Assembly (NCBI GenBank): GCA_002269645.1
Contig: NIVC01002209.1
Location: 124,001-188,000 of the forward strand
Reading direction: 5' to 3'
DNA from: Macrostomum lignano
Lineage: Eukaryota
DNA: 64,000 bases
Part shown: one piece after another, positions 2,688 to 38,187 of the stretch
Layout of the letters: each line of letters starts with the position of its first letter
Position numbering within the stretch: the stretch's first letter is position 1
Program-made: the position numbers and the translations under genes
Notes under the pieces: model-generated
Databases searched by the model: none
Told to the model about the DNA's origin: nothing
What the model saw: the letters and a program-made list of their open reading frames with translations, nothing else

Positions 2688-5131
2688 TCAGTCAGCTTTG
2701 ATCTCATTATCAGCCGCCGCGGACGCCACCTTGGCCGCCTCCTCGCTGAGTGGCCCATACTCGGCGCTCATGACGGCCCGGACTCGCTCGCTGAGGGCGG
2801 GCACGTCCGACTCCGTGAGGCCTTGGGTGGTCACGGGTTCGAGCACCCTGGCCAGCACCAGGCCGGGCGAGTCGAACCGGCGCTGACGCTTTGAGTAGAA
2901 ATTTGAGTAGCTCGAAAAGACCACGGGCACGACTGGGACCTGCAGTGGTGAAAAATGAGTGCGAAGTCAATGTCAAATAGTTAGATAGGGCTGTCATAAA
3001 GTGCGCCAGAAATCTGTCAAATAGAGCGCCAGAAATCTGTCAGAAAGAGCGCCAGAAATCTGTCAGAAAGAGCGCCAGAAATCTGTCAGAAAGAGCGCCA
3101 GAAATCTGTCAAATAGAGCGCCAGAAATCTGTTAGATAGAGCGCCAGAAATATGTCAGATAGAGCGCCAGAAATCTGTCAAATAGAGCGCCAGAAATCTG
3201 TCAGAAAGAGCGCCAGAAATCTGTCAAATAGAGCGCCAGAAATCTGTCAGAAAGAGCGCCAGAAATCTGTCAGAAAGAGCGCCAGAAATCTGTCAGAAAG
3301 AGCGCCAGAAATCTGTCAGAAAGAGCGCCAGAAATCTGTCAAATAGAGCGCCAGAAATCTGTCAAAAAGAGCGCCAGAAATCTGTCAGAAAGAGCGTCAG
3401 AAATCTGTCAGATATGGCGGCATCATCTGTGTCGATTGGTTAACTAATTGCTAAAAGTGCAAAAAAGCAGGGCTGTGAAGTGCACTGACCTGAGCCTGCA
3501 CCGCCAGATGGAAGGCGCCCTTCTTGAACTCGCCAAATTCACCGCCAGACTGTCGGGTGCCTTCGGGGAAAATCCATACGCGCAAACGGCTGCTGGCGTC
3601 AGCCAGACGGTCGCCAAGGCGACGCATCTCGGCGATGGCAGACTGGCGGCCCCGGGAGACGAACACACAGCCACACAGCCAGCCAGCGAGGCCGAACCAT
3701 CCAGCAAAGAGCAGGGACTTCTTGGCCACTAAAATGCATGGCGAGGGCCAAACGTGACTGATGCCTATCAGGTCCAAGCTGGACTGATGATTGGAAATGA
3801 CTACGAAATTTCCAGGTAGGTCGCGGATTCGATTCTTGTCTAGAACTTGAACTCGAATGCCGAATAGTCTGGTGGTGAACCACATTAGCACCATGGGATA
3901 CCTGGTGTATTTAGTGATGGCAGTTTGACTTTATATTTTGGTTTATGATTAAACAACTTATATAATCTTAAAAATAAATGTACTAGTGCTAATTATATGC
4001 CTTTATAATAGTATGCTCGAATATTCTTTCCATGTAATAGCTATATAATTGAATAATATTGAAGCCTTTCTTAGAAATTGAATCTACGCAAAATGCTAAA
4101 TAATAGTTTGTTTAAATACACCAAATGTTTGTTATAATATGGTAAAATCATTTGTTTTAATGCACAAAATAAAATGGGGAAATATTTTTTGTTATAAAAG
4201 TATCAGGGGTAAATATAGGAGCAATTTTATAGCAAATAAACTCTAACTGTCTGTGACCTGTGAGCAAAACATTGCCAACAAAATAGCAGTTCAATCTATA
4301 CATTTTAAAGTCTTTTAAGTTTAATAGTGACTTATTCATTTACAAAAGCTGAGAGCAGTACCAAGAAACTTGCTAAGAGAAGGGAATTGGGGAATAATTT
4401 GCAGAAGCATACTAAGAGAGACGCCGTGACCCTCTAGTCTCAGTGAACGCCCAGATTAGGACTATTTACTAAATACATGTACCAATACTAGACCACTCAG
4501 GCCATAAGCTACAAGAATGCTACCAGAAATGCTACTAAGAATGCTACCCAGAAATATTTGAATGAAGGCATTAAGGCATTAAGGCAAGATTTAGTGTCAG
4601 CAGTAGAAATTTAATAGAGGAAATCATAAACCTGTAACAACTTTGGTGGCAATTAGTGGGATAATTGGAGGACAGAAGTAAGCCCTACAACATAAATAAC
4701 TAAGAAAATATATAAAAAATTCTTTTTTGATATAGGTCTCTTTCTGAAAAAACATCATTTTAGCTCACACATTCAAAATGTACAAAATTTTGCCATGGCT
4801 CATCTGTTCCATTTTTGCTTACAATTTTAATATACAATATTTAAAATTCTAAGGGGAAATATAGAACCTCAAAAAACCCTAGTAAAAGGATAAAAGGTGG
4901 ATATCGTTCTTAATTTAAAAAAATACTAAGAACTTACCTAAAATTTCTTGGATCCTTTGGTTTGAGCAAACTTGGAAATGTTGATAAAAATCCATGAGTA
5001 AAAAGGTGCAGGTAGTAAACTGCCATTTTAATTCTGTATCTGACAATTGAAGGAAGTCGAGGAAAAATTATGGCATAGAACAGATAGCCAGAGATGGTGA
5101 TTCCGAAGGCGTAAATTAAGAACTCTAACAT
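2688..5131 (-). CDS. AGPAT1/2: 1-acyl-sn-glycerol-3-phosphate acyltransferase (AGPAT1/2, PlsC family), 3 exons: 5131-4938, 3901-3490, 2939-2688; 285 aa
   Basis: Acyltransferase motifs NHQSSLD and FPEGTR, plus KKGAFHLAVQAQ|VPVVPVVFS. N-terminal hydrophobic segment. GT-AG junctions are phase-consistent (2,0) and the total of 858 nt is divisible by 3. Confidence 0.95.
3003..3412. repeat. 23-bp minisatellite (AGAGCGCCAGAAATCTGTCAGAA), ~18 copies, filling AGPAT intron 2
   Basis: Period of 23 read directly; a solo/dimer copy occurs at ~6328-6362. Confidence 0.95.
4420..4560 (+). repeat. Dispersed repeat of unknown family (copy 1 of 3; others at ~30975 and ~33175)
   Basis: Shared GCYGTGACCCTCT..TC.CA.G.GAAYGCCYAG.A.T..GA motif, followed by GACCACT.A.GCC.ATAAG-like and ATGCTA(C/T)CA motifs. 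Confidence 0.6.
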
Positions 5132-5200
5132 TTTTCTCACTTCCGTACGCCCGCGTAACCGTAAACTCTTCTTAATAGATGAACGAAATACGGTTACACC
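5132..5200 (-). promoter_or_regulatory. CpG-retaining promoter-proximal patch of AGPAT with an ETS-like CGGAAGT motif
   Basis: GGTTACGCGGGCGTACGGAAGTGAG lies directly upstream of the ATG. Function is inferred. Confidence 0.35.
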
Positions 5201-6786: not shown

Positions 6787-9700
6787 CTACTGACAGCCAA
6801 GTCCCGCAATCCTGATGCCCTCCTGTTCCAGCACTTCGCGAACAATTTCAAAATTATCAGTCCGAGTGTTGGCGATTCGACTGTTCAGCTCGCGAGCCGA
6901 GGTGAGGGCGGCCTGCGCGCGGAGAACGAAAATAAAATAATAATATTACTATGGTAGTTAGTAGTAGCAGTAGTAGTAGTAGTAGTATTAGTATTCGTAG
7001 TATTCGTAGTAGTAGTAGCAATATTCTATCAGTGGTATCAACACTCCTTACCCTTTTTCTCTCTAAACTGGATGGCAAATGAAGGTCAAAAGATGGCGCA
7101 CTTGATGTCTGACTGGAGTTGCCAGCGGCTGGTCTGTGAAAATGAGAAACAAACAAATCAATACTTTGCATATACTGATTTAGAATCAATTGCGCCTTTA
7201 AAGCCATGGATGGCATCTCAGAAACTCTCCAATCATCCATGGCATCTCAGCAACTCCCCCATTGAGCCAATTGGCATCTCAGCAACTCCCCCATTGAGCC
7301 ATGGCATCTCAGCAACTCCTCCATTGAGCCATGGCATCTCAGCTACTCCCCCACTGAGCCATGGCGTCTCAGCTACTCCCCCATTGAGCCAATTGGCATC
7401 TCAGCTACTCCCCCATTGAGCCAATTGGCATCTCAGCTACTCCCCCATTGAGCCAATTGGCATCTCAGCAACTCCCCATTGAGCCAATGGCATCTCAGCA
7501 ACTCCCCCATTGAGCCAATGGCATCTCAGCAACTCCCCCATTGAGCCATGGCATCTCAGCAACTCCTCATTGAGCCAATTGGCATCTCACCAACTCCCCC
7601 ATTGAGCCAATGGCATCTCAGCAACTCCTCATTGAGCCAATGGCATCTCACCAACTCCCCCATTTGGCCAATTGGCATCTCAGCAACTCCCCCATTGAGC
7701 CATGGCATCTCAGCAACTCCCCCATTGAGCCAATTGGCATCTCAGCAACTCCTCATTGAGCCAATGGCATCTCAGCAACTCCCCCATTGAGCCAATTGGC
7801 ATCTCAGCAACTCCCCCATTGAGCCATGGCATCTCAGCAACTCCCCCATTTGGCCAATTGGTATCTCAGCAACTCCCCCATTGAGCCAATTGGCATCTCA
7901 GCAACTCCTCCATTGAGCCAATTAGCATCTCAGCAACTCCCCCATTGAGCCAATTGGCATCTCAGCAACTCCCCCCCATTGAGCCAATTGGCATCTCAGC
8001 AACTCCCCCCCATTGAGCCAATTGGCATCTCAGCAACTCCCCCCCCATTGAGCCAATTGGCATCTCACCAACTCCCCCATTGAGCCAATTAGCATCTCAG
8101 CAACTCCCCCATTGAGCCAATGGCATCTCACCAACTCCTCATTGAGCCAATGGCATCTCACCAACTCCTCATTGAGACATGGCATCTAAGCAACTCCTCA
8201 TTGAGCCAATGGCATCTCAGCAACTCCTCATTGAGCCAATTGGCATCTCACCAACTCCCCCATTGAGCCAATTAGCATCTCAGCAACTCCCCCATTGAGC
8301 CAATGGCATCTCACCAACTCCCCCATTGAGCCAATTGGCATCTCACCAACTCCCCCATTGAGCCAATTGGCATCTCACCAACTCCCCCATTGAGCCAATT
8401 AGCATCTCAGCAACTCCCCCATTGAGCCAATGGCATCTCACCAACTCCTCATTGAGCCAATGGCATCTCACCAACTCCTCATTGAGCCATGGCATCTCAG
8501 CAACTCCTCATTGAGCCAATTGGCATCTCACCAACTCCCCCATTGAGCCAATTAGCATCTCAGCAACTCCCCCATTGAGCCAATGGCATCTCAGCAACTC
8601 CCCCATTGAGCCAATGGCATCTCACCAACTCCCCCATTGAGCCAATTGGCATCTCAGCAACTCCCCCATTGAGCCAATTGGCATCTCAGCAACTCCCCCA
8701 TTGAGCCAATTGGCATCTCAGCAACTCCCCCATTGAGCCAATTGGCATCTCACCAACTCCCCCATTGAGCCAATTGGCATCTCACCAACTCCCCCATTGA
8801 GCCAATGGCATCTCAGCAACTCCCATTGAGCCAATGGCATCTCACCAAACCCCCTTATTGAGCCAATGGCATCTCAGCAACTCCCCCATTGAGCCAATGG
8901 CATCTCAGCAACTCCCCCATTGAGCCATGGCATCTCAGCAACTCCTCATTGAGCCAATTGGCATCTCACCAACTCCCCCATTGAGCCAATGGCATCTCAA
9001 CAACTCTCCCATTGAGACATGGCATCTAAGCAACTCCTCATTGAGCCAATGGCATCTCAGCAACTCCTCATTGAGCCAATTGGCATCTCAGCAACTCCTC
9101 ATTGAGCCAATGGCATCTCAGCAACTCTCCCATTGAGACATGGCATCTAAGCAACTCCTCATTGAGCCAATGGCATCTCAGCAACTCCTCATTGAGCCAT
9201 GGCATCTAAGCAACTCTCCCCCATTGAGCCAATGGCATCTCACCAACTCCCCCATTGAGCCAATTGGCATCTCACCAACTCCCCCATTGAGCCAATTGGC
9301 ATCTCACCAACTCCCCCATTGAGCCAATTAGCATCTCAGCAACTCCCCCATTGAGCCAATGGCATCTCACCAACTCCTCATTGAGCCAATGGCATCTCAC
9401 CAACTCCTCATTGAGACATGGCATCTCAGCAACTCCTCATTGAGCCAATTGGCATCTCACCAACTCCCCCATTGAGCCAATTAGGCATCTCAGCAACTCC
9501 CCCATTGAGCCAATGGCATCTCAGCAACTCCCCCATTGAGCCAATGGCATCTCAGCAACTCCCCCATTGAGCCAATTGGCATCTCAGCAACTCCCCCATT
9601 GAGCCAATTGGCATCTCAGCAACTCCCCCATTGAGCCAATTGGCATCTCAGCAACTCCCCCATTGAGCCAATTGGCATCTCACCAACTCCCCCATTGAGC

Positions 9701-11705
9701 CAATTGGCATCTCACCAACTCCCCCATTGAGCCAATGGCATCTCACCAACTCCCATTGAGCCAATGGCATCTCACCAACTCCCCTTATTGAGCCAATGGC
9801 ATCTCAGCAACTCCCCCATTGAGCCAATGGCATCTCAGCAACTCCCCCATTGAGCCAATGGCATCTCAGCAACTCCTCATTGAGCCAATTGGCATCTCAC
9901 CAACTCCCCCATTGAGCCATGGCATCTCAGCAACTCCCCCATTGAGCCAATTGGCATCTCAGCAACTCCCCCATTGAGCCAATTGGCATCTCAGCAACTC
10001 CCCCATTGAGCCAATTGGCATCTCAGCAACTCCCATTGAGCCAATTGGCATCTCACAACTCCCCCATTGAGCCAATGGCATCTCAACAACTCTCCCATTG
10101 AGCCAATGGCATCTCAAGCAACTCCTCATTGAGCCAATGGCATCTCAGCAACTCCTCATTGAGCCAATGGCATCTCAGCAACTCCTCATTGAGCCAATGG
10201 CATCTCAGCAACTCCTCATTGAGCCAATGGCATCTCAGCAACTCCTCATTGAGCCAATGGCATCTCAGCAACTCCTCATTGAGCCATGGCATCTAAGCAA
10301 CTCCTCATTGAGCCAATGGCATCTCAGCAACTCCTCATTGAGCCAATGGCATCTCAGCAACTCCTCATTGAGCCATGGCATTCACTGCTCACATCATCAC
10401 GTCCTGATCCACACTGTTAGTCCGACTGTGCGTTCTCAAGGAGCCGTAGGAGAAGCCCGAAGGGTTCCGACAGTGAGCTCCGGGTGCAGTAGCAGGCACC
10501 GCAGACGACTCCAATAGCATCGCAGTTGGTGCAATCAGATGATCGGCAGTTGCCAGGGCGATATCTGTCGAATCCAAAGGTTTAACCGAGTTTGAACAGG
10601 TAGCAGAGGTTGCAGCTGCTGCTGTTGCAGTTGTCGCCATCGCAACTGATACTGAGGCGGCAACTCCATGCGGGTTATTGTTAGCAACAGGCTGAGAGAC
10701 CGCAGCAAGCCGGCGAACTCCCAGCCTCAGGGTGCTGTTATCCAGCCTCTGTCGCTGATTATACGGACTCAATATACAGCTGTGCTCGGCTGCTGTTGAG
10801 CAAGTGGAATCGGCCGCATTGCTGCCGAGTAGTTCGGTTAAATTGAGCACAGCAAAACCCAGCTTGGAATAAGATCGGCCGCCTCGCTCCTCTTTGCGAA
10901 CCGAGACACGAAGCACGATGGGAGGTCCGGGGCCGCCCAGATGACAGGCAAATTCCATGGGACCCTGGTCTGACCAGGCCACCTGCAAGGGGGGGTCCAA
11001 GGCTAGTGTTACGAAGGAGTTATGACACTAATTAGTGTTATGAATGTGTTATGACACTGGCTAGTGTTATGAAGGTGTTATGACACTAATTAGTGTTATG
11101 AATGTGTTATGACACTGGCTAGTGCTATGAAGGTGTTATGACACTAATTAGTGTTATGAATGTGTTATGACACTAGCTAGTGTTATGGTGTTACAACACA
11201 AATTAGTGTTATGAAGGTATGTTATGACACTGGCTAGTGTTATGAAGGTGTTACAACACAAATTAGTGTTATGAAGGTATGTTATGACACTGGCTAGTGT
11301 TATGAAGGTGTTATGACACTAGTGTTATTAATCAAGGTGTTATGACAGTGGTTAGTGTCAAGCAAGTAGTTTTGGTATGGCTGATTAGTTATAACTAGTT
11401 GTTTTTTAACTGAATACACTGTTCCGTCAGTGATGATGTAATTAGCTCGTAGTAATTAATAATTAATGCTAGACAACTGACCAATAAAATATAAGTCACA
11501 AGCCACTAACCTTATTGTCTCGAATCTCTCTACGGGTTGAGTAGGCGCAGAACCTACCGCCACTGAGCAGGCGCACCTTGGCAAACAGAACCCCATTGCT
11601 GAGGGTAACACCTTCAAGCTCAATTAGCTGCAGTTGAACTCGCTGCTTTCGAGGACTCCTGCCTTGACCTCGGCCACTCAGGCTGGGTCGAGAGCAGCAG
11701 AGCAT
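6787..11705 (-). CDS. FAM102A/B (EEIG1/2): FAM102/EEIG1-family NT-C2 domain protein, 4 exons: 11705-11511, 10982-10393, 7133-7052, 6912-6787; 330 aa
   Basis: NT-C2 signature (LEGVTLSNGVLFAKVRLLSGGRF..STRREIRDNKV.W; LRVSVRKEERGGRSYSKLGFAVLNLTE; SCILSPYNQRQRLDNSTLRL), then HSRTNS and a C-terminal RIANTRTDNFEIVREVL resembling the family TRVDA motif. All junctions are GT-AG and phase-consistent (0,2,0); 993 nt. Confidence 0.9.
6955..7020. repeat. (TAG)n/(AGT)n microsatellite in FAM102 intron 3
   Basis: Read directly. Confidence 0.85.
7209..10381. repeat. ~30-32-bp minisatellite (GGCATCTCAGCAACTCCCCCATTGAGCCAATT), ~100 copies, occupying ~97% of FAM102 intron 2
   Basis: Read directly; variant units (CTCCTC/CTCCCCC, CAAT/CAATT/CAT) recur in larger duplicated blocks. 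Confidence 0.97.
11003..11350. repeat. 29-bp minisatellite (TAGTGTTATGAAGGTGTTATGACACTAAT and variant), ~12 copies, FAM102 intron 1
   Basis: Period of 29 (11062 vs 11091); each unit is an imperfect palindrome AGTGTTAT...ATGACACT. Confidence 0.9.
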
Positions 11706-12244
11706 GAATTAATATAGAAAAAAACTGTTTTCTAATAATCTAAATAAATTATGGAATGTTAACCTGGGCTTAACCCATGTGGTTAATCTGAAATTGGAAA
11801 TTTATAAAGAAAAATTTGCATTTTTAATAATTATTGAGTAATGATTTGACAGGTCAACTTAATATTGTTACATTGATATTTATACTATAGTATGGTATAA
11901 TATAAATGCTATATTATTATTATTATTGCCTTTTACTTATACTGACACTTTCAGTAGAGTAGTGGATAAATTATCTGTATAATATATAATTGATCACATG
12001 ATATCTCTGGCTCTTTAATTAATTGATCATGCAATTTTCTAGAGTTGATAGAGTACCAATCGTGTAGTTTTTCTAAAGTGACAAAAATATAAATAAAGCA
12101 ACAGTGCGCACCAGTCACATTACTTTCAACTACAACTAGAAACTTCAAGCAACTGATAGAAGACTAAATCATATTATTCTTCAACATGAGAACTAAAAAA
12201 TTATTAGACTCTAAACCATCAAGTCACCCTTTGAGACTGCTATG

Positions 12245-12460
12245 GGGGTGTAGCCCAGTATTTATAGTTAAGTGCAGCACTCTGATGTGCCAGTGCAGTC
12301 ACATTAATTTTGGGCTAAATTGGAATCTTTGCTTGGCTCTGCAGCTCTGCTTGTGCAGTTAATTCCCTTGAAGGCCAACCGCCAAGGCACAGTGAAGTGT
12401 ACATGCCTAATAATGAATAAGTTAGGGCCACGCACATACACTCCTGTGTATGTGTGACTA
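12245..12460 (+). mobile_element. tRNA-headed SINE, CpG-decayed copy with B-box deleted
   Basis: Colinear with 55940-56160 (TGCAGTCACATT..TTTTGGGCTAAATTGGAATC...GTGAAGTGTACATGCCTAA...GTTAGGGCC). Confidence 0.75.
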
Positions 12461-15224: not shown

Positions 15225-16027
15225 AAGATTGGCTTTCACTGATTCAATGTAGCATTTAGCATAATATTTTATATTTAGTATATGGATTTCACTTGCTATA
15301 TATATTCTAATAATGTCTATGAATTTTAAGATAAACAAAACAATTAGGCCTAGCAACTGTGAAGTTGCATTAATAAAATGATTTTGACTAGATAAGAAAG
15401 TAATCTATTTTTTTAAGCCATAGGCCCTAGTATAACATAAGTCATATTCATAATAGGGGCCTAAATTATATTAAATAAGAATTAGGGCCTAGTCACTATT
15501 CATTATAAAAAGAATTACAAATTTCAAAGGATTTATGGCTAAGCCCAGGACATTTTAATTGCTGCCATGACAAAATCTGCAAAAGCAATATTATATAGGC
15601 CTATTGAGAATTTATTATAAATAGCATCAACACCAAGTTAGGCCTACCATCATAGGACATAGATCATAGATGCAGTGTTAGTAGTAAGATGCTCATTGCT
15701 CAAGCTCAACTTAGGGCTAACTTAGGCCCTAGTTTAAATTGTATAAAATAAAAGTTTGGTGACATAGATTAGGGCCTACAGCTATAGCCTAGCCAGGCCC
15801 TAGGCTAAGGGAAAAAGATGAATATGCAGAATATTTGGCTCTTAATGACTAGATCTACATCTACAGATCTAGATCTAAATCTACAGAGCTGTAAGTCTGT
15901 ACGCCCTACATGAACGCATGAAATTCAAAAAGCAAAACTATTTTAAAAAACGTTTTTGTTATTTCTTTAATTTCCTGTGCATTCGAGTAAGGCCTATACT
16001 TTTTCAAAGCATTCTTCTGACGTTAAA

Positions 16028-16289: not shown

Positions 16290-16376
16290 AAAGACAAAAG
16301 CTATACGAGCATACGCGAAGTAAGCAAAATTTCTAAGAAACGGTCATTTTAAATTTATGGATTTCTAACTCCCACG

Positions 16377-21239: not shown

Positions 21240-21671
21240 GCTTGTGATATGAACTATGAAATTTAGAAATTAGAATGCAAGACAAATAAATAACTAGAAA
21301 AATACAAGAAAGAATAAATAAAAGTGGTAAAGCAAATCTTTAATTTAAGTCTTACAGAGCCTTAGTTTAGTCTTGCCCTATCAAAAAATGCATAAATCAT
21401 ACTTAATATCATGATCAGAGTGCATGCTGTTAAATAAAAAAATATGAAAACTATAAAAAGTTATGCATAATATTTTAATGTATCCAATTTATAAAATAAA
21501 AAATCTTTTATTTCAATCTTTTGAGATTTTTTAGATTTTGAAAAAGGTTTTTTATATATTATATTTAAAACTAGATTAAAATGTCATATATTATTTATGT
21601 ATTACATAATTTAATGTTATTACCTATACTCCCAAAGATGCTATTTTGTAGGAAAAAATCTTGCATGCAAC

Positions 21672-25564: not shown

Positions 25565-28500
25565 CTACTGCTGCCTCTTGTACGGATGGAAGCTGTGCGC
25601 CCCGGCCCCGCCGCCGCGATTATAGTCGCCGCTGCCGCCGTACATGCTTGTTGGCGGGCCGCCCCAGCCGGTCTGCTGGCCGGAGGCGTCCCAAGTAGCG
25701 GCGGCTGTCGGCTGGCCACCCCAGGCGCCGCTCTGGTTGCCCCAGGCACCGGCCATCTGCTGCTGCTGCCAATTGTTGCTTATCTGGTCCCAGCCGGCGC
25801 CAGTTTGACCGTTCCACTGCGGAGTTTGTTTCGGGTTCGGGAAAATCAAGGAAGGTTTCTACTGGCCTGCTAGAACAGGTATTTCCCATCATTAGGGAAA
25901 AGGGATCGGTTACAATTATCAGAAGAATTCCTATTACTGTGGAATAAAAATTTGCACTGATAATTAGAGGGATTTCCTATTATTTTTATGGAATAGAGAT
26001 TTCCCTAATTTCCACAGGGATTCTCCATTATTATTAAATAGGGATTTCCCATAATTGTTAGAGGGACCCTCCATTATTATTTAATAGGGATTTCCTTTAA
26101 TTATTCGAGGGATTCCCATTTTTATTAAATAGGGATTTCCCATAATTATTCGAGGGATTCCCATTTTTATTAAATAGGGATTTCCCATAATTATTCGAGG
26201 GATTCCCCATTTTTATTAAATAGGGATTTCCCATAATTATTTGAGAGATTCCCCATTTTTATTGAATAGGGATTTCCCATAATTATTCGAGGGATTCCCA
26301 TTTTTATTGAATAGGGATTTCCCATAATTATTCGAGGGATTCCCATTTTTATTAAATAGGGATTTCCCATAATTATTCGAGGGATTCCCCATTTTATTGA
26401 ATACGGATTTCCCTTAATTATTCGAGGGATTCCCATTTTTATTGAATAGGGATTTCCCTTAATTATTCGAGGGGTTCCCATTTTTATTGAATAGGGATTT
26501 CCCATAATTATTCGAGGGATTCCTATTTTTATTAAATAGGGATTTCCCATAATTATTCGAGGGATTCCCCATTTTTATTGAATAGGGATTTCCCATAATT
26601 ATTCGAGGGATTCCCATTTTTATTGAATAGGGATTTCCCTTAATTATTCGAGGGATTCACATTTTTATTGAATAGGGATTTCCCATAATTATTCGAGGGA
26701 TTCCCCATTAGTATTGAATAGGGATTCCCTTTACTTTTGGAATAGGGATTTCTGCTCGGGAGTGGAGCGTTCCTAAATCACAGACGGAACGGCACGCACC
26801 TGATTCCAGCCATTCTGATCCCAGCCAGTCTGGCCCCAGCTGGAGCCGCCAGTGGCTCCCGGCCATCCAGCCGTGCTGGTTGCTGGGTTGCTCCAGCTCT
26901 GCCCCCAGCCCTGGCTAGGCGTGTTCCACATGCCGCCGCCGCCGCCGGCACCGCGACCACGGCCGCGACCAGGCGCAGTTGGGACGGGACCGCCGCCAAC
27001 GCCGGGTGGTCCCTGAACGCGGCGACTGTAGTTTGGCGGCTCCATTGCTTTAATCTCGACCTACAAAGAATGCATTACTAAGTGACTGCGCCTTTTCCAT
27101 TTATTTTAAGAGTTCGATTACTATATATCTAGATTTGCTAAGTTTACAGCTATTACGCGGCTACTTATATAGGGTTTACTTACGGTATCCATGGTTACAA
27201 GGGCCATCTCAAAAGTGTCTTATTAGTTCTTATTTAGACACAATGCGTGCATAGAATGTGGTATCTTGCAGATTTGAAAATCGGCTGGGTTCAAGTATAG
27301 TTCCCATTTTTAATAGCTATCAATAAATAGTATCGCATAAAACACTTTTGAGATGGCCATCTCGTACCCAATGCTGTGCCGTATGGGGAGGGGATAATTC
27401 AGCCGAGTTAAGCCGCATAAGCCTATAAAATGCGCATTGCATACGTAAACAAACAACAGAAGACAGAAATGCATAAAAGAAGAGCACAATTAAAGTAAGT
27501 TAAGCACCTGTTTGCCGTTCAACTGCACATAGTGCGTTTGAATCAATCTTTTCACAGTTGTTTCGTCTTCAAAGCCGACAAACGCAAAGCCTAGAGAATT
27601 TGTGTTTAGCAAACAAAAATAAGGGAAATAGTCAAGATTGCTGTCAAAATATTTATTTATTAAAAAAGGCATTTTTAAAAACAATTTTGACAGTAATGAC
27701 TTTCCCGAAAGCAAGGTAGCTTTTCAAAGTTTATTGGCATTTAGTATCATTTTTCGTTTAATCTGTCAGAAGTACAGAATTGATTGTTTCTTGCCAGTTA
27801 ATTTTTAAGTAATAATTTTACGTTCATTTATTACTTAAAAATTAAAAATTTCGAAGGTTTTGGCTTTAAAACGAAAGCTTTAATTAATATAGAAGAAAGC
27901 TTGCAAAAAACACTGCTTTATAATTGTACAGTACGAGTGCAATGTAACCCAGTCACTTGCTTTTAATTGTTACAGTACCCATCTAAGAAGGACTGCTTGA
28001 CAAAATAGCAAAGCAACTGAGACAAAAGCTGTACCGTACAAAATCTGAATTACAGCAATAGAAAATATTTTAATACGCTATTAATTTACTGTACTTCTTC
28101 TAGACAGGGGTTTTGAAATCATACTTGTACACTTTACCGTATTTGGAGTAAAGCATACTCATATAAATTTACACTTGCTTACGGTAAGTCATACTCGTAA
28201 AATTGTTTAAAAAAATTAATTCACAAAATGCGCAAACTACTTAATCCATCGGCCTCAGCTGAATGTTTGCAAAGCTGTCTGTCTTGTATTAAATGTAGTT
28301 TTTCTGGCGAAATTGTTTAGTTAAGATTGTTCAGTTTTCATACCTGAAATCACTTGCAAAACTATCTAGCTGAGATCTATGGATTGAGCTCTAGAATTTA
28401 CTTCACTGTAGTTTTTATTAGGGCAATTTTTTTTCGCTTTCATACCTCGATGGCGCTGCTTGGACAAGTCCATCATTAGGTTGACATCGGTTACCTGAAA

Positions 28501-31500
28501 GTTCGATTATGTCACTAATTAGTATTATGTTAGAGTGCTCAATCTGAGATCAGTTGATTGATTGACCCGCTGTTGGCAATAAAATGAAAACTAACAGCAC
28601 TCATTTATCACTCACATTGCCGAAAGCGCTGAAGAAGTTGCGAACAGTTTCTTCGGTATGCTCCGGGGCGATGCCGCCAACAAAGATTTTCAGGCTGCGA
28701 CGGTTCTGCAGTGGCGAATGAAAAAGCACTTTTTTTAGAGACTGGAGGCCGTGTGCACCCTGGCGCACTTTAAGCGACATTGTCGCGCAACCGGCGAGAG
28801 GCATTGCTGCCCATTCCGCAGACTCCTCTGAGCAGGCACACAAGCGCGCAAATACGTAAGCAGTCATACGCACAGGCACACACTCACACAGGAGTGTACA
28901 GCGGCCCTAACTTAATTTATCGTTAGGCATGTACACTTCACTGCGCCTTGGGGGGTTGGCGGACTTTTACATAATGCCAAAATTTGACTTGTGTAAGCAT
29001 GGAGTCTGCAGACTTCTCTGCAACTATAATGGATCAGAGGCTCAGCAATGAAATAAGGTAGGATAGAAATGTTGCTATTGTATTTGATTTCGAACTTTTT
29101 GACTGATGTCAGCTGGCATTCTGAATTCAGACCCAGGGTGTCAAATAGCATTGCAATTTTGTATTGGCACTAACCTTGCCCTTCATGTTGACGTTGCACT
29201 GTTTAGGATCGACCTCTTTGCCATCGATAACGTGCGGGGTAGCGGAGTTGAGCACCAGATCGACAATGTTGGGATCTTTGTAGCGAATGTAGCCGAAACC
29301 GCGGGACCGATTGGTCCGATTGTCCATCATGACTGCGGCGTCTTCTACTTCGCCATATTTGGAAAAGTATTGCCTCAGGGTGTCGTTGGTGGTGTTCTGA
29401 GACAGGCCGCCGACAAATATTTTACTACAGGGTGAAAAATTGCAAATGCTTGTTAAACATCTGCTTGCCTCCACTTTATTTGTAAGTATAGCATATTCAA
29501 ATTCATATATGAGTCTTATAAACATTAAATTTCATGAAAACATTTTTTAACTATTGTGTATTAGTTTACACACAGGTTTCTTGGAGCACATGGACTCCAT
29601 GGCATGCCACTCCTAATTCTGGGCCCACTGGACCAATAGTAATACAGGAAATTTTAAAGAGACAAGATGCAACTTAAAATCAACAGTAGGTTAGAAGTAA
29701 CAAGATGATCTACAATAGTAGTCCATTATATTATAGCTTATAAACACAAATCCTTGTAAAACATGTATAGTTTTATGGTAAAATGAGGAGAAAAAACTAT
29801 TTTATAAAAATCCTGCCAAAAACATGCAAAAAACAATTTATTTCATCCAACTTTAGGCTAGCAATTTTAGACATTCTGGCAACTATAGTGATAAGGCTCC
29901 TAAAAATCAAGTTGTTAAAAAAATTGAACCTTAGATTTGAATCTTGAATTTTTCCAAGGAATTGCTTTATGAAATAGGCTTTGTTTATCAGTTAAACAGC
30001 AAAGGTAATTTTATTATAAATAGGGGCTGTCTGACAGCCTAAGTCAAATAAACTGTCTTTGTGTGTTTGATTGAAAAGTAACTGTTTTCCCTATAGGAAA
30101 AAGTTGTAAAACTGCAGACGGCGTCTGTCTTTTGAAATTTTTCTAAAGCGCAGTGCGCGCACAGGGGCACAGCACCTGTGTGTGCGGTGCCCTTCCCAAC
30201 TGGCTGCTGCTCAAGCAAATAAATATACATGGAAGGGGGCCTAATACCTCTGTAGAAGGAGCCTATACACTTGTCATTTATAATACCTAGCGATGTTCCA
30301 AAATTTCAATTTCAATTTTCCAAAAATTGAAATTTTTAAGAGCATATTTTGATTTCGAAAAAAATCGGAAGTCAAAATTCTGAAAGTGTCTAAGTGGCTA
30401 AAAATAAACAGTGAGTAATTTCTGCTACATATACATGTATTTTGTTTTGCATAAGCAGTAAATCAAAACATAAAAAAGTAAGTGTTAGTCATATTAAACT
30501 TTGTTTTTCTGAATTTTGATTTTGGAAAATTTCAAGTTTAATTTCAATTTCAGAAAGTTATCGAATTTTGATTTGGACAGATTGAAATAGACGATTTTGT
30601 CAATTGCAATGGAACATCTCTAATAATGCTAAAGCGCAGTAAAATAATTTGACTCTACTCTAAATTGCGCATCCACAGGTTTTCAACTTTTATTCCAATA
30701 GGGACTGTTCTTAATTGCAGCTTGCAATGCATCTCTCCAGTCATTCTATTTGGAGAACAGTCAATCAGCCTCAGGGCTTGTACTTTCTCTTGTGTTACTT
30801 TTTTTGAGTAGTAGATAGTGACTTAGGAATAGCCCCAAAATTAGAATTCAATCCATTCTTAGAAAACGAGACATCCAGATTTATAATTGGAGGAATCACC
30901 TTTAGAAGGCAGAAATCCTACCATAGGGTAGGGAAATCCAGACTCAGAGTCTGAGAAACCTGCCTCAGGGCAGAAAACCCAGCAAGTAAGCTGTGACCCT
31001 CTGATCCCAGGAATGCCCAGGATTGAGAGAATAAAATTTCTTAGAGGAATATACGGATAGGGTAGACAGTGCCATAAGACTGCCCAGGCTATAAGTACAG
31101 TATATGTACATATGCTACCAATAGATATATACGCTACCAGAAGTAAAAGTAAAAGTATTATAAGAGCTATTAGTAAAACTTTGGAGACTTAACAGAGAGA
31201 TTATAAAATAGAGAAGTAAGATGCCTGTTACAGCTGATAGCTTAATGGTGGGATTTTAATAGAGAGAAGTTTAGCCCTGCTACATTTAGAGTGTCTTTTT
31301 ACAGATGCAATGCTTTCATTTTAACATATATTGCATCTATTTAGTAAATAAGGTCATGCTAACATGATCTTTCTATTGGCAATGGAAATTTGTATTAATC
31401 ACAAAAATGCAAATATTATTTTAGCTTGCACATTTAGATATTTTGTTAATTAATATATAGCCAAGAAACTAAATTGAATTATAAGTTTTTAAAGATGATT

Positions 31501-33989
31501 TTATAAATAATTTAAAAAATAAAGTATCTTGTTTAGGCATTTTTTATTTCTAGAATCTTGGAATCTAGAATCTGGTTCTTTATATTCTTGACAATTTTAC
31601 AAATAAATTAGGTAGAAAAAGTATTACTAACCAATGTAAGCAACAAAAAAATATATGTGAAACCTTGGGAATCACCTAGCCATTTCTTTTGGTTGCTATA
31701 AAAGTTGCTATTGGCTGAGAACAGTCGTGACTACTATTCTGTCCAATAGCAATTTACATATATGTCCAAAGGCATACAAGGCCAATGCATACCCAAATTT
31801 TTGGGTGTATACTACATGATTCAGAGTGTGGTTAATTTATCCAACCCTCTTGTTCACCATGATCCCCCACTTTATACCTGAGGACCTCAACCTAAGTCTA
31901 TCATGTAATGTAACTAAGTTGTGCCACTTGCAAGATTGAGACTTTACCTAGACTTTCAAAAGTAGTGACCATAGACCAAGGTGAAATTCATCCCAAAACA
32001 AATAGTGTTTTGCACAGAAAGTAAAAAATTGCTATAACTATAAAACTGCCAAAAATATTTTATAATAAAAAAAGAGAAAAAGAACCCAAATAGTAGGTAC
32101 ACCAATGAGATTTTGAAAGCTCAAAAATTCAATATCTCTTGAAAAATATGATAGAGTTTGATTGCACAAGTAAAAAAACACCTCATTTAATTCAATAGTT
32201 GGATTCAAATTAAAAATGTTATGCAACTTGTGTACATATTTTTGCTAGTTTTGTAACACAAATTTGCAAATTTAAAACAAAAAAAACAATTTAAGAGTCC
32301 ACAACATTTTTATTTATTTTTTAATTTTCTTATCATTGATGTCATTTTTTTGCATAGTTTATTCTAGTTTTAATAAAATAACTTTGTTAGTTTGCTTTGC
32401 TTAACATAGTTTTTTAAAAGAATAGATTACAAAAAGATTGATTATCTTTTGAGTGAAAACAGTGCATGTTTTTTAACATTATATGAGAATAACTAATAAA
32501 ATACATATTGCAGTCTGTTAAGCTTGACTATTTCTTTCTTAAAACATATGCTTAAAACATATCTACATATTTTTATATAGAACCAATTTCTATTAGAGTT
32601 ATACTCCTTTTTAGATTTTTTTAACATAAGAAACTAATAAAAATATGCAAGTATAATGGTTCTACATTCCTATAAACAAGTTCTGGCCTATAATTTAGTT
32701 TATATATAATTTACTATACATTCAAAAAATACATACTAGAGATAGCCCGCAAATTAAAGAATTATTCTATTCTTTAGAGAACAAAGACTCTAGATTTAGA
32801 ATCTAGCAACTCACCTTAGAAGACAAAACACCTACCAAAAGGGTAGACTAATCTATACCTAAAGTCAGTAAGCTGTGACCATACATGTGCAACAGTTGGC
32901 TGAGTTGGCCAATTTGGCTGACTGATTTGGCGGCCAACCAAGGAAATTCACAAAAATGGTCACCCAAATTAATACCAAGTAGTACTAAATAGATGACGAG
33001 ACATTTTGTGTTAATAAGACAGTCATAAATACTCTTGCCATTTACCCAAAGTTGCATAAATTTTGTTTTAGGGTTTCTTTTACATGTAAGTTGCATTTTT
33101 GGGCAAAAACTATGTCGCATTTATGTTAAAACTAAGTCATACGGCTGACCGAATTTTGAAGGTTGCGCATGTATGGCTGTGACCCTCTGATCCCAAGGAA
33201 TGCCTAGGACTAAGAGAAAGAGATTGTAGAAGAAAAATTAGGAAGTATAGAAATAAGATAGATTGTGAAGACCACTTAAGCCAATAAGTATATAATATGC
33301 TATCAATTTTATATGCAACACTACTAGTAGATCAATACATGTATTATTAGTAAATAATATAGTGCCAGAAGTACATCAAATATTACATATAAGAATAATC
33401 TAGAACAACATTGGTTGCAGCTTTTAGGATACTTATAGTAAGAAGAACTAGCCTTATTACAGCTGGTAGCAGCAATAAGATTTCTCATAGTATAGGAAAG
33501 AGGCCTGCAATAACTTAGTAGCATCAGTAAGAAAATCTTTAAAAACAATGAGAATGTTATTAGAGGATAGAACTTTTCCTTTAAAACTTCTATCTTCTTT
33601 ACTTCTTTCTTCTCTCTTGTCTCTCCTCTTATCTCTTCTCTCCTTTCTACTATTTTCTCTTTTCTCTCCTCTCTTCTCTTTTATCTCTGCTCTCTCCTCT
33701 TTTATCTTTTCTCATTTCTCTTTGCTCTCTACTCTCTCTTTTCTCTATTCTTTTCTCATTCCTCAGTCTCCCCTCTCTCAACATTTCCCTTTTCTCCCCT
33801 CTCTTCTTTCTTCTCTCAACTTTCCTCTCTACTCTTTTTTCTCTCTCTCTCCTCTCATCTCTTCTCTTCTTTCCTCTCTCCTCTCTCCCCTCTTCTTGTC
33901 TTTTCCCTCACCTCTTTTCTCATCTTTTCCCTCACCTTTCTTCTTTTCTTTGCTTTCTTGTTTCTCTTCTTTTATCTTTTATCTTCTCT

Positions 33990-34069
<80 letters not shown>

Positions 34070-37000
34070 CTCTCTTTTCCTACCTCTCTTTACTGCCCTG
34101 ACAAAGAATAAATCTATTGGAAGTACCGGCAAATCTAACCAAATTGACTTAGTATCAGTCTTTTTTTACCAAGTCAGAGCCTGAGATTGTAGGTTCCCTC
34201 CTTTTTCCCTCTCTCTTATATGTATCTCTCCTATCATCCCTAGCATCTCTCTTATATGCTCTCTTTTTCTATCTCTCTTCTCTTTCCTCTCCTCACTCCT
34301 GACTCACTTTTCTCTCCCTTTATCTTTGTTCTCTCCTCTTATATCTCATAATCTCATCTATCTTACCTTTTATCCCTCCTCTATTCTCTCTAATTTTCCT
34401 TTTTTAATCTGTAATCTTTACTCTCTTATATGTTCTTTAATCTCTCTCTCTGTACTATTTCCTTCCCTTCTTTTAACTCCTCTTTTTTTCTTTCTCCTTT
34501 TTTCTATTCTCTTTTCTTCCTTTTTCTATACTTTCTCCCTCTCTTGTCTTTTGTCTTATCTCTCCATTTTCCTTTCTCCTCCTTGATCTCTCATTTTTTA
34601 TCTCTCTTTACACTTTTTTTCTCTTTTCCCTTTACTCTTTCATTGCTCTTTTCACCTTTTTCCTCTGCTCTTCTCTCTTCTCTTATCTGCAGCTCTCTGC
34701 TCTCTCATCTTTACTTTCTTCTCCCTCCTCTCTCCCCTTCTCTCCTCTTTTTTCCCCTTGTCTCTTATTGTTTTTTATCTTTTTTCTTATCTCCTTTTTT
34801 ACCTTTTCTTTTTTTCTAATTATGTTACTTTTTTTCCACTCTTCTCTTCTCTGCCTCTCAGCCATGAGCTGGATTCTTGTCTGGACTTTGAGGTAAAAGT
34901 CTGCTTATCCCTGCTTGGAAAGCCAGTTTGTGAGACATAGTACTCTCATGGTTGTTTTCATGCTTTAATCATGTCATCTTTCTTGCCAATTCTTAGGAGG
35001 CCATTTAAATTTTAAAGTACTTCTTAAGAGAAACTTAAAATTTCTATGACTAATTTAGTAAGGTTATATTGCATTGCATTGCCTTTTCATAAATCTTTGG
35101 CTTTTACAAACCATGCTAGATGTGGATGGATTGCTTTGATTTGCCAATTGCCATCCAACTGCTGCAGAGTTTGCCTATACAGAGGGCAGTGGTTAGAATT
35201 TCTGACTTAACTATTATGGCAAAAAATGTAGCGTCTCCACAGGGGTGCAGAAAAGGCTATAAATAAATCTATTCCAAAACACTGTATATTCACTATGTAT
35301 ATTCAGTCCTATTGCCTTACCCTTGGTCTAGCTCTGGGGGAATGAGTGAGTGAGTAGCACAAACAACAGAAAAAGCAGACAAACTTTATATACTTACAGT
35401 TTTTGTTTTGATTGAGTTGTAGAGTAGTTGAAACTTTAATAAACATAAATAAACTAATTTTGCAGTAGTGCAACACACCAAAATTTAACAAATTTATGCA
35501 GCAAGTAGTTATATAGTATATGTAAAATTATTCAAATATCATAGTCAAGATGGCATATGCACACTGGATTTAAATTTAGGAAGAGGCTCTATAGTCTTAA
35601 GTATGCACTATACATATAAGAATTTTTTGCTTTGCATGCTGCATGCAAGAGGGTTGGATCAAATCCACTAAATGTATTGCTTAATGGCTAGGGGGATAAT
35701 TATAAGTTAGGGCATTGCAACAATAAAGGACTTTTTTGCATTTTGCCTTTTTATACGCAATTGCAGATAAACAATGCTTATAGAAATGCTTCCTTTTTGT
35801 GACTTGAATATATTTTAGCTTTTCAATTATTAAACTTACAATGTGTCTTTCAAAATTAATATACAATAGACCCTTAATCATTTCAAAGATGACAAATATC
35901 ACCATGTTTTAAAAGGACTAAAATTTTTTGTGTATGTAGACTATGGACCACTCAAAATGCACACCCAAAAGACTTGCACCTTAAATATGCAAAAAAATAT
36001 ATTATATTTTTGCTATCTTTTAGAATGTTGAAATTTTAAACACATTTTTACCAAATTTTTGGCATGCAAAATGCACGCAGAATTTTCTGGCAAATATGGC
36101 TTTTTTCTTAGTATGGTTCTAATAGGGCTATTATTATATAAAATGTTTGCTAGAAGTTTTATTATAAGTTTCTCTATATTTAAAATGTCTAAAATAAGAT
36201 AGTAAGGATTTGGCCTATTATAAGATATGCATAGTTATTTGTGTTATTTATCCAATTATATAAAAAACACTAAATTTTCATTAGTATATCTATGTGTAAT
36301 ATAGGGACATATACTATACCATTTAACTTACTTATTTCTATATTGCTTTCCAATAAAAAATAAGAAAATAGAACTGCCTATTATGTTTCATCAAAGATAA
36401 TAAAAATTATGATTTCTAATAGGAATTTGAATATATTTTTATAATAGGCCTACAAATACAATTAGCTATACAAGGTGCTAAACACAATTAGCTATAGAAG
36501 GCACCAAACACAATTCAACAGATGGCAACTAATTATAGTAAGCAACAAATGTTAGGCTAAGCTTTTACTTTTATATATAATAATCATCTTTCTATAAAAA
36601 ATCAAATGGAAAGTAAAAAACCATGTTGCAAACAATATAAATACAAAAAATATATGCTAGAAAATTCTGATATATAATGGACCTAAAAATGGTTAGTATA
36701 AAGTATCTAATGTACAGAAAAATCTGCCAGAAAATTATACCACAGAGCTAACATATACTATATAGTATAGCTATTATTAATATATACAAAAGACTAAAAT
36801 GTTATAATGTAAAAAGGGGTCTTATATTGCTACAATGCAATAAAGGTCTTTCCTTAAATTGTTGCAATATAAAAAAGGTATTTATTATTATTGCAACACT
36901 TTTTTGATAATTTCCAGCATATATCACAAGTTTTGGCCTAAATTTGAAGTTATGGTATAGGGGGGGGCTTTTTTGGGGGTGCTAGTTGTTTTGTTTGCTG

Positions 37001-38187
37001 AGCAGATGAAAAGTTTTCTTTTTCAAAAACTATTTATTTGCCACAAAATAGGGGTGGAGGATGTGGAATAAAGTGGGGAGCTGCCTAATCTACAACCTCT
37101 AGTTATTAACCTTTTCATATTCTTTTTTGGCTTTTGCCTAAACTATATATTTGGTGTTACTATTGACTATAATCATCATATTGTAAAACTTGCTGTTTAA
37201 TGCTTAAATACTTTTTACAAATGACAGATGTCTTGCATCTAAGAAATTTTGAATAAAAATAATTTTTTGCCAATATTTATATCTTTATCTAATTTTTAAT
37301 AGTTTCTATTCCACTGTTTTCAATTAAGCTTTTTTTAGGTGTATATTGTAAAATAGTTTGTTAAAATGATGATCAAAGACCCTTATATACATATAGTGCT
37401 TTATAAAAATATTAAAGATTAGATAGATTGTTGGGCAGCTTCCCAATCCCCACCCTACTCCTTATCTCTACTCTACTTTATTTTCTAATAGACAAATAAT
37501 TTTTAGAAGGAAAGGCAAGGGTGTTTTGTCTTTTTAGTAGATGAACTATTGGCAGACAAATGAACTAGAAACCATTTTTGGCATACCATGTAACAGATTT
37601 AAGTGTGGTTCAAAGACAATTGGCTGAAATTATTCTTTTCATAAAAAAAGTTAATATATTTATTGAAAACTAGTTTCTAAATATGACATTTTTGATAGTA
37701 CTTTTTTGAGAAATTGGACTCAATTTCCAATTCTTACTAAAAAGTGTATTTAATATAATTAATCAATTAGATTCTTTACAATTATTAAACTACTCAATTT
37801 ATTTAATAGGCACTACATAGTTATAAAGTATTTTTTCTATAGAAAATTTCTTTATATAACACTTTCTATTTTTAGTTATCTAGGTTATTTTTAAACTAGA
37901 AAAAAACATTTTTATATTTTTGTTCACATTTCTATATATCTCACTAACTAAAGATAAAGTCTACTACAAATGGTACATAAAAAAGGAATTTTTGAAGGAT
38001 AGACATAGTTTTACATGAGTCAAGAAGCATTTTGTTTCAATAAAAATATCATTTTTTCCAGCAAACAAAACATTTTGTCCTATTTTTTTACAAACACTAG
38101 GCTTGTACAACTAAGATCGCTGATTATAGATACTTACCCTATTTCATTTCCAGCTGAGTCAGTGGGTACATCCATTTCGGTCGACAT
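25565..38187 (-). CDS. DAZAP1: DAZAP1/Hrp48-like hnRNP with two RRMs and a G/W/Q-rich tail, 7 exons: 38187-38138, 29424-29175, 28705-28616, 28494-28446, 27590-27508, 27060-26800, 25816-25565; 344 aa
   Basis: MSTEMDVPTDSAGNEIG|KIFVGGLS (cf. DAZAP1 DEIGKLFVGGL), SRGFGYI, PHVIDGKEVDPKQC, LKIFVGGI, RHRGFAFV, VEIKAMEP, and C-terminal FHPYKR. All junctions are GT-AG and phase-consistent; 1035 nt. Intron 1 is 8.7 kb. Confidence 0.92.
25930..26750. repeat. 45-bp minisatellite (TTATTCGAGGGATTCCCATTTTTATTAAATAGGGATTTCCCATAA), ~17 copies, last DAZAP1 intron
   Basis: Period of 45 (26101 vs 26146). Confidence 0.95.
27202..27358. mobile_element. Small MITE-like element (157 bp) with 17-bp perfect TIR
   Basis: GGCCATCTCAAAAGTGT ... 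ACACTTTTGAGATGGCC; no TSD identified. Confidence 0.5.
28730..28962 (-). mobile_element. SINE copy (5'-truncated, A7 tail) in DAZAP1 intron 2
   Basis: Reverse complement matches 56075-56307 (GTGAAGTGTACATGCCTAAC...GAATGGGCAGCAATGCCTCTCGCCGGTTG...GTGCGCCAGGGTGCACAC). Confidence 0.85.
30288..30622. mobile_element. hAT-like MITE (335 bp)
   Basis: TIR TAG(C/A)GATGTTCC ... GGAACATCTCTA; 8-bp flanks ATAATACC / ATAATGCT (6/8 match). Confidence 0.6.
30975..31145 (+). repeat. Dispersed repeat, copy 2 of the 4420 family
   Basis: GCTGTGACCCTCTGATCCCAGGAATGCCCAGGATTGAGA ... ATGCTACCA. Confidence 0.6.
33175..33310 (+). repeat. Dispersed repeat, copy 3 of the 4420 family
   Basis: GCTGTGACCCTCTGATCCCAAGGAATGCCTAGGACTAAGA ... 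GACCACTTAAGCCAATAAG ... ATGCTATCA. Confidence 0.6.
33550..34870. repeat. Polypyrimidine (CT-rich) low-complexity tract including pure (CT)n
   Basis: Read directly; the S/L/F-rich ORFs are artefacts. Confidence 0.95.

Follow-up and report, generated by a model that had tools for sequence, protein, structure and literature searches.

The window analysed here, 64,000 nucleotides of Macrostomum lignano DNA (assembly GCA_002269645.1, contig NIVC01002209.1, positions 124,001 to 188,000 of the forward strand), carries four genes encoding an AGPAT acyltransferase, a FAM102-like NT-C2 protein, the kinase NEK7 and DAZAP1, and at the 5′ end of each of them a block of DNA was found to have lost nearly all of its CpG dinucleotides. 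The four genes lie head to tail on the minus strand. AGPAT is represented by an exact 285-aa gene model with coding exons at 5131-4938, 3901-3490 and 2939-2688 and a Pfam Acyltransferase match; a search with its exon region (3454-3930, minus strand) retrieved an M. lignano paralogue as best relative (65% identity; other matches ≤52%). The FAM102-like gene (four exons, 11705 to 6787) is 100% identical to BOX15_Mlig000830g1. The first coding exon of NEK7 is located at 21048-21239 and the stop codon at 18375; the kinase exons were confirmed and matched NEK7 in the PDB (E 3e-123). For DAZAP1, coding exon 1 (MSTEMDVPTDSAGNEIG; 38138-38187) was identified by reading the sequence and by tblastn, exon 2 was mapped to 29175-29425 and five further exons follow down to 25565; the exons are 94% identical to M. 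lignano Mlig020819g1.

Further loci were included in the analysis. Two fetched loci (L002 and L004) proved to be 100% identical to the window. The others are a duplicate contig (L005, NIVC01003182.1), a paralogous NEK/FAM102 locus (L003, NIVC01001504.1) and the contig bearing the AGPAT paralogue (L001). The Mlig_3_7 assembly contains 180 Mb of duplicated blocks (PMC5730564).

An earlier note had listed the CpG-poor blocks by eye and had called for CpG observed/expected ratios (o/e) in sliding windows. These were computed, together with a per-feature table and a two-state hidden Markov model (HMM) on whether a C is followed by a G. Tandem repeats were masked before the HMM was run, because arrays abound in M. 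lignano (15% of the genome; PMC5730564) and an array of a CpG-less unit is trivially CpG-free. A case in point is a 32-bp minisatellite (ATGGCATCTCAGCAACTCCCCCATTGAGCCA; 102 copies, 3.2 kb) in intron 2 of the FAM102-like gene, found by TRF at 7210-10381, which has a GC content of 52%, 2 CpGs where 179 are expected and a TpG/CpA o/e of 1.6-1.9. This array and those at 11003-11347 and 19773-20404 are CpG-free through a founder effect, the unit having contained no CpG, and tell nothing of methylation; with all three masked the domains persisted, and a tandem-repeat artefact was therefore rejected. The HMM returned six CpG-poor segments in the window (3862-5044, 11690-15897, 20613-21720, 23112-23955, 29412-30115 and 30669-38111) and, with tandem repeats masked, none within 38112-64000. 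Sliding o/e fell to 0-0.3 at 4-5, 11-16, 20-22, 23-24 and 29.5-38 kb, whereas the AT-rich DNA in between had 0.9-1.3. Ratios, feature table and HMM recovered nearly identical segments at all of the listed blocks, so the eye-made list is real.

The largest domain (29412-38111) corresponds to intron 1 of DAZAP1 (29426-38137), which retains 29 CpGs where 208 are expected (o/e 0.14, Poisson P 8e-55). The donor GT of exon 1 lies at 38137/38136 and the last CpG at 38118, so the domain starts 19 nt past the donor; beyond this CpG not a single one was found over 2042 bp, where 34 are expected. At the other end, the intron is devoid of CpG from 30119 to the acceptor at 29426, whereas exon 2 contains 19 CpGs, the first of them 15 bp inside. 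Exons 2-7 and introns 2-6 (25565-29425) served as CpG-retaining internal control, with 49 CpGs versus 61.7 expected in introns 2-5 (o/e 0.79) and an o/e of 0.82-1.26 in exons 2-7. The DNA upstream of exon 1 (38188-39700) retains CpG as well (o/e 0.87). The HMM split the domain at a young insertion of 617 bp (30087-30703) that resembles a miniature inverted-repeat transposable element (MITE), with the ends CCCTATTGG...CCTATAGGG, the target-site duplication AACAGT and an empty site in the duplicate contig; it alone carries 13 of the 29 CpGs of the intron (o/e 0.74). The same intron 1 domain was called on the duplicate contig (L005 687-9997). A 79%-identical relative of the MITE is present there at 2496-2688, within a different insertion specific to L005 in the same intron; since copy-specific insertions occur in both duplicate contigs, the MITE family has been active since the duplication.

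In AGPAT, the HMM segment 3862-5044 covers intron 1 (3902-4937; 6 CpGs versus 23.5 expected, o/e 0.26) and most of coding exon 1 (4938-5131). Exon 2 (3490-3901), intron 2 and exon 3 (2688-2939) retain CpG, with an o/e of 0.87 and 1.02 for the two exons; intron 2 consists of a 23-bp minisatellite and is, hence, a weak control. The AGPAT paralogue on the other contig shows the same picture: intron 1 has an o/e of 0-0.3 and intron 2 of 0.6-1.0, and the HMM segment (L001 9654-12288) comprises upstream DNA, exon 1 and intron 1 and stops at exon 2. A candidate donor, CAG|GTAGCC, near L001 9621 may mark a splice site just ahead of the start of this domain. Coding exon 1, 194 nt in length, falls within the domain in either paralogue. 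Its CpG o/e is 0.52 in the window and ~0.5 in the paralogue, and its GC content at third codon positions (GC3) is low, with 0.36, 0.65 and 0.80 for exons 1, 2 and 3 of the window gene and 0.42, 0.93 and 0.89 for those of the paralogue. Because both genes have a low-GC3 exon 1 within a domain, the same gene part has been under regional mutation pressure since an old duplication; the position of the domain at AGPAT is old and maintained. The recurrence that the earlier note had seen among genes of the window extends to this anciently duplicated locus and to the duplicate contig. A further domain was called on the same contig as the paralogue (L001 21739-24997), where it adjoins the 5′ end of the coding sequence of a KH-domain gene; again, a putative donor (CA|GTAAGT, near L001 25094) is found just ahead of the domain start.

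The FAM102-like domain (HMM 11690-15897, minus strand) lies directly upstream of the ATG at 11705; between 11706 and 15900, 21 CpGs were counted where about 121 are expected (o/e 0.17). The block may represent intergenic DNA, a 5′ intron or an outron; the latter two come into question because of a good acceptor-like site (tttccaatttcag) near 11788, upstream of the ATG. Trans-splicing affects 38.8% of M. lignano genes (PMC5730564). At NEK7 the domain is in two pieces. One (20613-21720; 2 CpGs versus 27.8 expected) covers the first coding exon (1 CpG versus 5.9 expected, 0.17), the following intron and ~0.5 kb upstream, the other lies further upstream (23112-23955; 1 CpG versus 20.7 expected); measured at 20705-21721 and 23112-23958, the o/e of both is ~0.05. 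The 3′ part of the gene has an o/e of 1.26. A donor-like AAG|GTAATA near 23976, just ahead of the domain start and ~17 nt before the last CpG, may belong to exon 1. The pieces are separated by a 1.4-kb segment (21672-23090; 53 CpGs versus 71 expected) including a 40-bp minisatellite (22378-22611). The segment (L004 16331-17749) has no counterpart in L005, in which an unrelated 468 bp is found instead, and it looks like young DNA. The earlier note had taken it for a CpG-retaining promoter patch; that it retains CpG is correct, but the segment is copy-specific and its role as a promoter is at most putative.

Taken over the window and L001, six independent domains each adjoin or include a first coding exon. 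As the earlier note had described, CpG is depleted at the 5′ ends of all four genes, and depletion stops at a coding exon, with CpG retained in the exons and AT-rich introns that follow. Two of its wordings have to be narrowed. A location in the 5′ intron of all four genes is demonstrable for intron 1 of DAZAP1 and AGPAT, but the FAM102-like and NEK7 blocks are situated ahead of the first coding exon or surround it. Further, the borders called splice-site-linked are indeed sharp, but on the 3′ side they are resolved only to about one exon, because selection could keep CpGs in exons. The architecture "first donor to first large coding exon" may be shared across genes, judging from the donor-like motifs and exon positions.

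Base composition does not account for the depletion. The unique CpG-poor DNA (12.15 kb, GC 0.296) has 30 CpGs versus 265.9 expected (o/e 0.11), whereas introns, flanks and upstream DNA of the CpG-retaining class (8.5 kb, GC 0.336) have 235 versus 240.9 expected (o/e 0.98; Fisher P 1e-54). Equality of the two values, which the earlier note had singled out as the outcome that would speak against its proposal, was not seen. GpC is alike in both classes (1.58 in domains, 1.52 in CpG-retaining noncoding DNA), and the distribution of CpG o/e is bimodal, depleted domains adjoining undepleted DNA of like composition (GC 0.30 versus 0.34). The blocks had also been described as rich in TAG and CTA, which was borne out: CTA/TAG has an o/e of 1.25 in domains and 0.91 outside (1.37-fold). 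Other trinucleotides enriched in CpG-poor unique DNA relative to CpG-retaining noncoding DNA are AGG/CCT (1.9x), CCC/GGG (1.7x), GCC/GGC (1.6x) and CCA/TGG (1.5x); G and C occur in runs there, and CCA/TGG is the sole enriched trinucleotide that obviously derives from CpG decay.

The mutational nature of the depletion could be followed in a transposon. A decayed DNA transposon of the Merlin/IS1595 type (14072-15224, plus strand) is located inside the FAM102-like domain and was recognised by Pfam DDE_Tnp_IS1595, 34-bp terminal inverted repeats and an 8-bp target-site duplication (AAGATTGG); its transposase is nearly full-length but broken. A close relative for a DNA consensus was not found, the best match having 49% protein identity, and CpG loss was therefore judged by the fate of arginine codons at the protein level and by dinucleotide balance. 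The element has 15 CpGs versus 55.5 expected (o/e 0.27), but 96 TpG versus 65.9 and 98 CpA versus 76.2; 40 CpGs are missing and ~52 TpG and CpA are in excess. Thus ~70% of its CpGs were lost to TpG/CpA, the products of deamination. Summed over the alignments with four homologues, positions aligned to arginine read arginine 24 times and histidine, glutamine, cysteine, tryptophan or stop 36 times. In VNH*LYF, the stop sits at an arginine conserved in all four homologues and is of the CGA-to-TGA type, and the single mismatch between the terminal repeats (1/34) is CG versus CA. From ~70% of CpGs lost while the terminal repeats differ at 1/34 we estimate, roughly, a per-site CpG decay 1-2 orders of magnitude above background, which is within the range of 5-methylcytosine (5mC). 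A second repeat was of less use: a SINE-like (short interspersed nuclear element) dispersed repeat occurs in three copies of 82-92% identity, one in the FAM102-like CpG-poor domain (12292-12456), one in the flank of DAZAP1 intron 2/exon 3 (28730-28960) and one near the RPTP gene (56004-56307). Over the ~165 bp shared, all three informative CpGs are lost in the domain copy, too few to be used.

Outside any domain, a decayed long interspersed nuclear element (LINE; 41961-44845, minus strand) with RVT_1 split over two frames served as external control. It has kept its CpGs entirely (2.9 kb, GC 63%, 303 versus 284 expected, o/e 1.07). The depletion is therefore regional and not specific to a sequence class, the Merlin element inside having an o/e of 0.27 and the LINE outside of 1.07. 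As the region 38188-64000 has an o/e of 0.85, global methylation was rejected, too. The 3′ flanks and intergenic DNA have 0.94-1.2, so that bulk neutral DNA is not depleted; the pattern is, as the earlier note had put it, the inverse of the CpG islands of vertebrates.

The presence of mobile elements raises the question of whether repeats rather than gene starts attract the process. A repeat- or heterochromatin-directed methylation, for example by small RNAs, could spread from elements and strike first introns since these are the longest and most transposon-rich, the transcription start site (TSS) being irrelevant. The domains do hold the Merlin element, MITEs and the SINE-like repeat, the blocks at FAM102, NEK and the KH gene, situated ahead of the first coding exon, may be intergenic, and the upstream region of the paralogous locus L003, repeat-poor and filled with minisatellites, is without a domain. 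On the other hand, the 2.9-kb LINE has its full CpG complement, no dispersed repeat was detected in the 1 kb of AGPAT intron 1, both AGPAT paralogues share a domain over exon 1 and intron 1 with a low-GC3 exon 1, and the borders fall at exons 1 and 2 and not at the ends of elements. We therefore regard this explanation as unlikely, although it is the most serious competitor of a process aimed at the gene start.

The duplicate contig allowed a look at the time course. L005 encodes an identical DAZAP1 protein, its DNA is 92-97% identical to the window copy and the same two domains are present. L004 and L005 were compared over window positions 15565-39420. DAZAP1 intron 1 DNA common to both contigs has an o/e of 0.09 and 0.06, whereas for intron DNA present in one copy only the values are 0.52 and 0.53 (binomial P 1e-5 and 2e-7 versus shared), which points to a CpG loss that depends on the age of the DNA. 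Outside the domains, transition differences affect 3.1% and 3.0% of CpG C:G sites versus 2.8% and 2.7% of other C:G sites. CpGs outside the domains are thus not hypermutable, which excludes a global methylation combined with selective retention of CpG. In old domain DNA the excess of TpG/CpA is small (1.12/1.15 versus 1.06/1.11 outside), as is predicted for equilibrium; the younger Merlin copy shows the excess.

These data bear on whether the footprint is a fossil, i.e. whether an ancestor of M. lignano methylated domains that are now unmethylated and have yet to regain CpG. CpG/TpG differences between the duplicates fit ordinary CpG gain alone, young insertions are still at an o/e of 0.5-0.75, and global 5mC is reported to be low (PMC11292947, PMC10658182), all as expected for a fossil. 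However, shared DNA is still at 0.06-0.09, and ordinary T-to-C change would add, by our estimate, ~0.03 o/e per 2% divergence; with such low values the process cannot have ceased much before the duplicates split. The Merlin element, with terminal repeats differing at 1/34, is already ~70% CpG-depleted, and DNMT1 and DNMT3 are retained (PMC9246332). An extinct process is, hence, improbable, and the activity of the process is bounded in time to about the split of the duplicate copies.

The duplicates revealed a second difference between the two classes of DNA. Transitions separate the copies at 2.7% of domain sites and transversions at 1.25%, compared with 0.70% and 0.49% in CpG-retaining noncoding DNA, i.e. 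domains diverge 3.9x and 2.6x faster, and CpG-retaining noncoding DNA evolves almost as slowly as exons. The slow class could reflect constraint, gene conversion or a regional difference in mutation rate; divergence at fourfold sites (4/167) is too imprecise to set a neutral rate. An explanation without any methylation has to be considered at this point, in which either CpG is avoided in regulatory 5′ introns of high AT content or GC-biased gene conversion maintains high GC and CpG solely towards the 3′ end, where exons are dense. The 3-4x slower divergence of CpG-retaining noncoding DNA, as if constrained or homogenised, would suit it, as would the low GC3 of exon 1 inside the domain and the fact that domains are the most AT-rich DNA here (GC 0.30 versus 0.34). 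But a tenfold deficit of CpG only, with GpC steady (1.58 versus 1.52), goes beyond base composition, a non-functional transposon has converted its CpGs to TpG/CpA, 2 kb are without any CpG where 34 are expected, and the borders are too sharp for conversion tracts. We consider selection or composition as the cause to be very improbable.

The spectrum of the differences was used to look for a cytosine deamination other than that of 5mC. Such a process near promoters, be it transcription-associated on single strands, AID/APOBEC-like or similar to repeat-induced point mutation (RIP), would agree with the location just downstream of promoters and with the 1.37-fold enrichment of CTA/TAG. An excess of transitions at C/T before A or T also appeared to favour it, but it was gone after low-complexity masking and a 3-nt margin around indels (transition:transversion shift P 0.21). 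An idea of non-CpG methylation was dropped for the same reason, the general 3-4x divergence being all that was left. Strand asymmetry was absent from the duplicate differences (sense C/T versus G/A, 71 versus 80 and 16 versus 13). RIP was rejected since, in domains, TpA/ApT is not raised (1.02 versus 1.03), (CpA+TpG)/(ApC+GpT) is higher rather than lower (1.33 versus 1.12) and the target DNA is unique; indeed, the domains in the window and L001 are almost wholly unique. As the deficit is CpG-specific and neither strand asymmetry nor a RIP signature nor a robust transition excess was found, other deamination is hardly credible, and the "other C-to-T process" which the earlier note had offered beside methylation has no support. 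The depletion is a regional, CpG-specific mutational footprint and not due to chance, composition or RIP.

As its cause, we favour a regional CpG-specific hypermutation, most likely the deamination of germline 5mC in a TSS-adjacent domain; this reading we hold to be probable, if by no wide measure, and 5mC is deduced here from its mutational trace. Germline methylation is a reasonable cause because DNMT1 and DNMT3 are reported to be retained in M. lignano (PMC11292947, PMC9246332) and 5mC is reported at a low level (PMC11292947, PMC10658182). The earlier note had proposed methylation or another C-to-T process; the CpG mutational footprint agrees with methylation, but 5mC itself cannot be read from a sequence. 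As footprint the domains are well supported; as methylation they are plausible but unproven. In the proposed mechanism, DNMT1 and DNMT3 would methylate CpG in the germ line, presumably to this day, within a domain beside the transcription start. The domain would begin within tens of bases past the 5′ splice site of the first exon, or around exon 1, span the first intron or the 5′ noncoding stretch and stop at the first GC-rich coding exon, while promoter DNA upstream, the remainder of the gene and its 3′ flank would be spared. Its place would be set by the position of the TSS and not by repeat content. Incoming DNA such as transposons would arrive with normal CpG and then decay to TpG/CpA, and old domain DNA would be at an equilibrium of ~0.1 o/e. 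In its most specific form, i.e. germline methylation aimed at a domain from just past the first 5′ splice site to the first large coding exon, with promoters, later exons and introns and at least some transposons spared, and with a topology undescribed in any animal, the proposal is tentative and we would rather not rely on it.

Several observations weigh against methylation targeted to the gene start. The material amounts to ~115 kb of non-redundant DNA overall. At L003, which carries the NEK/FAM102 paralogues, the HMM called no domain and CpG is scarce over just ≤1 kb ahead of the ATG. Only at DAZAP1 and the two AGPAT genes is the domain proven to lie downstream of the transcription start. 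Because mobile elements reside in first introns, which are also the longest, position is confounded with length and repeat content. Inside the domain, 8-11 CpG/TpG differences between the duplicates are about as many as expected from ordinary T-to-C change at ~800-900 TpG/CpA sites; because this change accounts for them, continuing hypermutation is unproven. Finally, the faster divergence of domains at non-CpG sites goes beyond what 5mC alone would do.

Among known systems, the mosaic gene-body methylation of invertebrates such as Ciona, oyster, annelids and cnidarians is similar in that depleted and replete CpG domains lie side by side in one genome, depletion is tied to conserved, probably broadly expressed genes and DNMT1 and DNMT3 are present in the organism. 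Unlike the situation here, mosaic methylation is body-wide, covering exons and most of the gene body. In our genes CpG is intact from exon 2 to the 3′ flank, 3′ introns included (0.8-1.26), and its loss (to ~0.1) is confined to exon 1 and intron 1 or to the DNA ahead of the first coding exon; depletion over exons and most of the transcribed body was not found in the later parts of DAZAP1, NEK7 and AGPAT. A link to housekeeping expression is suggested by the identity of the genes and by two poorly mapped contrast genes. In Hymenoptera, methylation is 5′-biased. The arthropod pattern resembles ours in having its target near the gene start and in housekeeping-type genes, and a sparse methylation would fit the reports of a low level. 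In most arthropods, however, exons are more methylated than introns (PMC7343188), whereas the footprint described here is mainly intronic or noncoding and the adjoining large coding exons keep CpG: introns and 5′ noncoding DNA are at ~0.1, exons are not hit harder than introns, and only a small exon 1 lies in the domain (~0.5; 0.17 in NEK7).

With vertebrates, the proposed process would share the deamination of 5mC to TpG/CpA and the sharp borders beside promoters. Polarity, however, is inverted, as most DNA here (dead LINE, intergenic DNA) keeps CpG and small TSS-adjacent domains lose it. The bulk CpG o/e of vertebrates is usually ~0.2-0.25, and the depletion of the domains is deeper. Fungal RIP and AT-rich isochores are comparable with respect to AT-rich blocks, C-to-T decay and transposon remnants, but differ in the RIP indices, in the target, which is unique DNA here, and in the deficit, which is at CpG and not at CpA. 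In the literature covered, neither CpG-poor 5′ introns of Macrostomum nor a methylation map of this animal group was found described.

If our reading is true, methylation in M. lignano is predicted at short gene-start domains that are already nearly CpG-free, and the low global 5mC would be explained because the methylated domains have lost nearly all of their CpGs. This would be the opposite of both the exon-targeted methylation of arthropods and the H3K36me3-guided, body-wide type, and would call for a targeting signal linked to chromatin near the promoter or to the way in which the first intron is defined. If confirmed, it would be a new arrangement among animal methylomes and a handle on DNMT targeting without the usual gene-body logic. 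The domains are also of relevance to transgenesis in M. lignano, for which promoter fragments and first introns are picked by hand (PMC5730564).

The paralogous locus L003 keeps the gene order kinase, then FAM102-like gene, and its FAM102 protein is ~52% identical to that of the window, which points to an old segmental or whole-genome duplication besides the recent one. The same intron that carries the 32-bp minisatellite array in the window is occupied by different minisatellites in the L003 paralogue (L003 11689-13122, 13676-14267 and 14683-15271).

In the region from 38 to 64 kb, the earlier note had named a lectin and an RPTP gene as lacking a CpG-poor block. The lack of a block agrees with the HMM, which called no segment there, and RPTP was confirmed, but the "lectin" exon had no Pfam match at E 0.001 or better, so this label is without Pfam support. 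At 45067-46920 and 48114-48494 (minus strand), this Cys-rich exon is followed downstream by a 618-aa open frame, in which a 15-nt unit is repeated ~58 times to give a mucin-like sequence rich in Thr, Pro and Glu (TTLEP/TTMEP). A 143-bp segment occurs in inverted orientation and with 99% identity at 123-265 and 41718-41860; since the second copy flanks the LINE, the start of the window probably holds the end of another copy of it. Two near-perfect microsatellites, (GATA)n/(ATAG)n, of 108 and 77 units are located 600 bp apart at 51126-51557 and 52150-52458.

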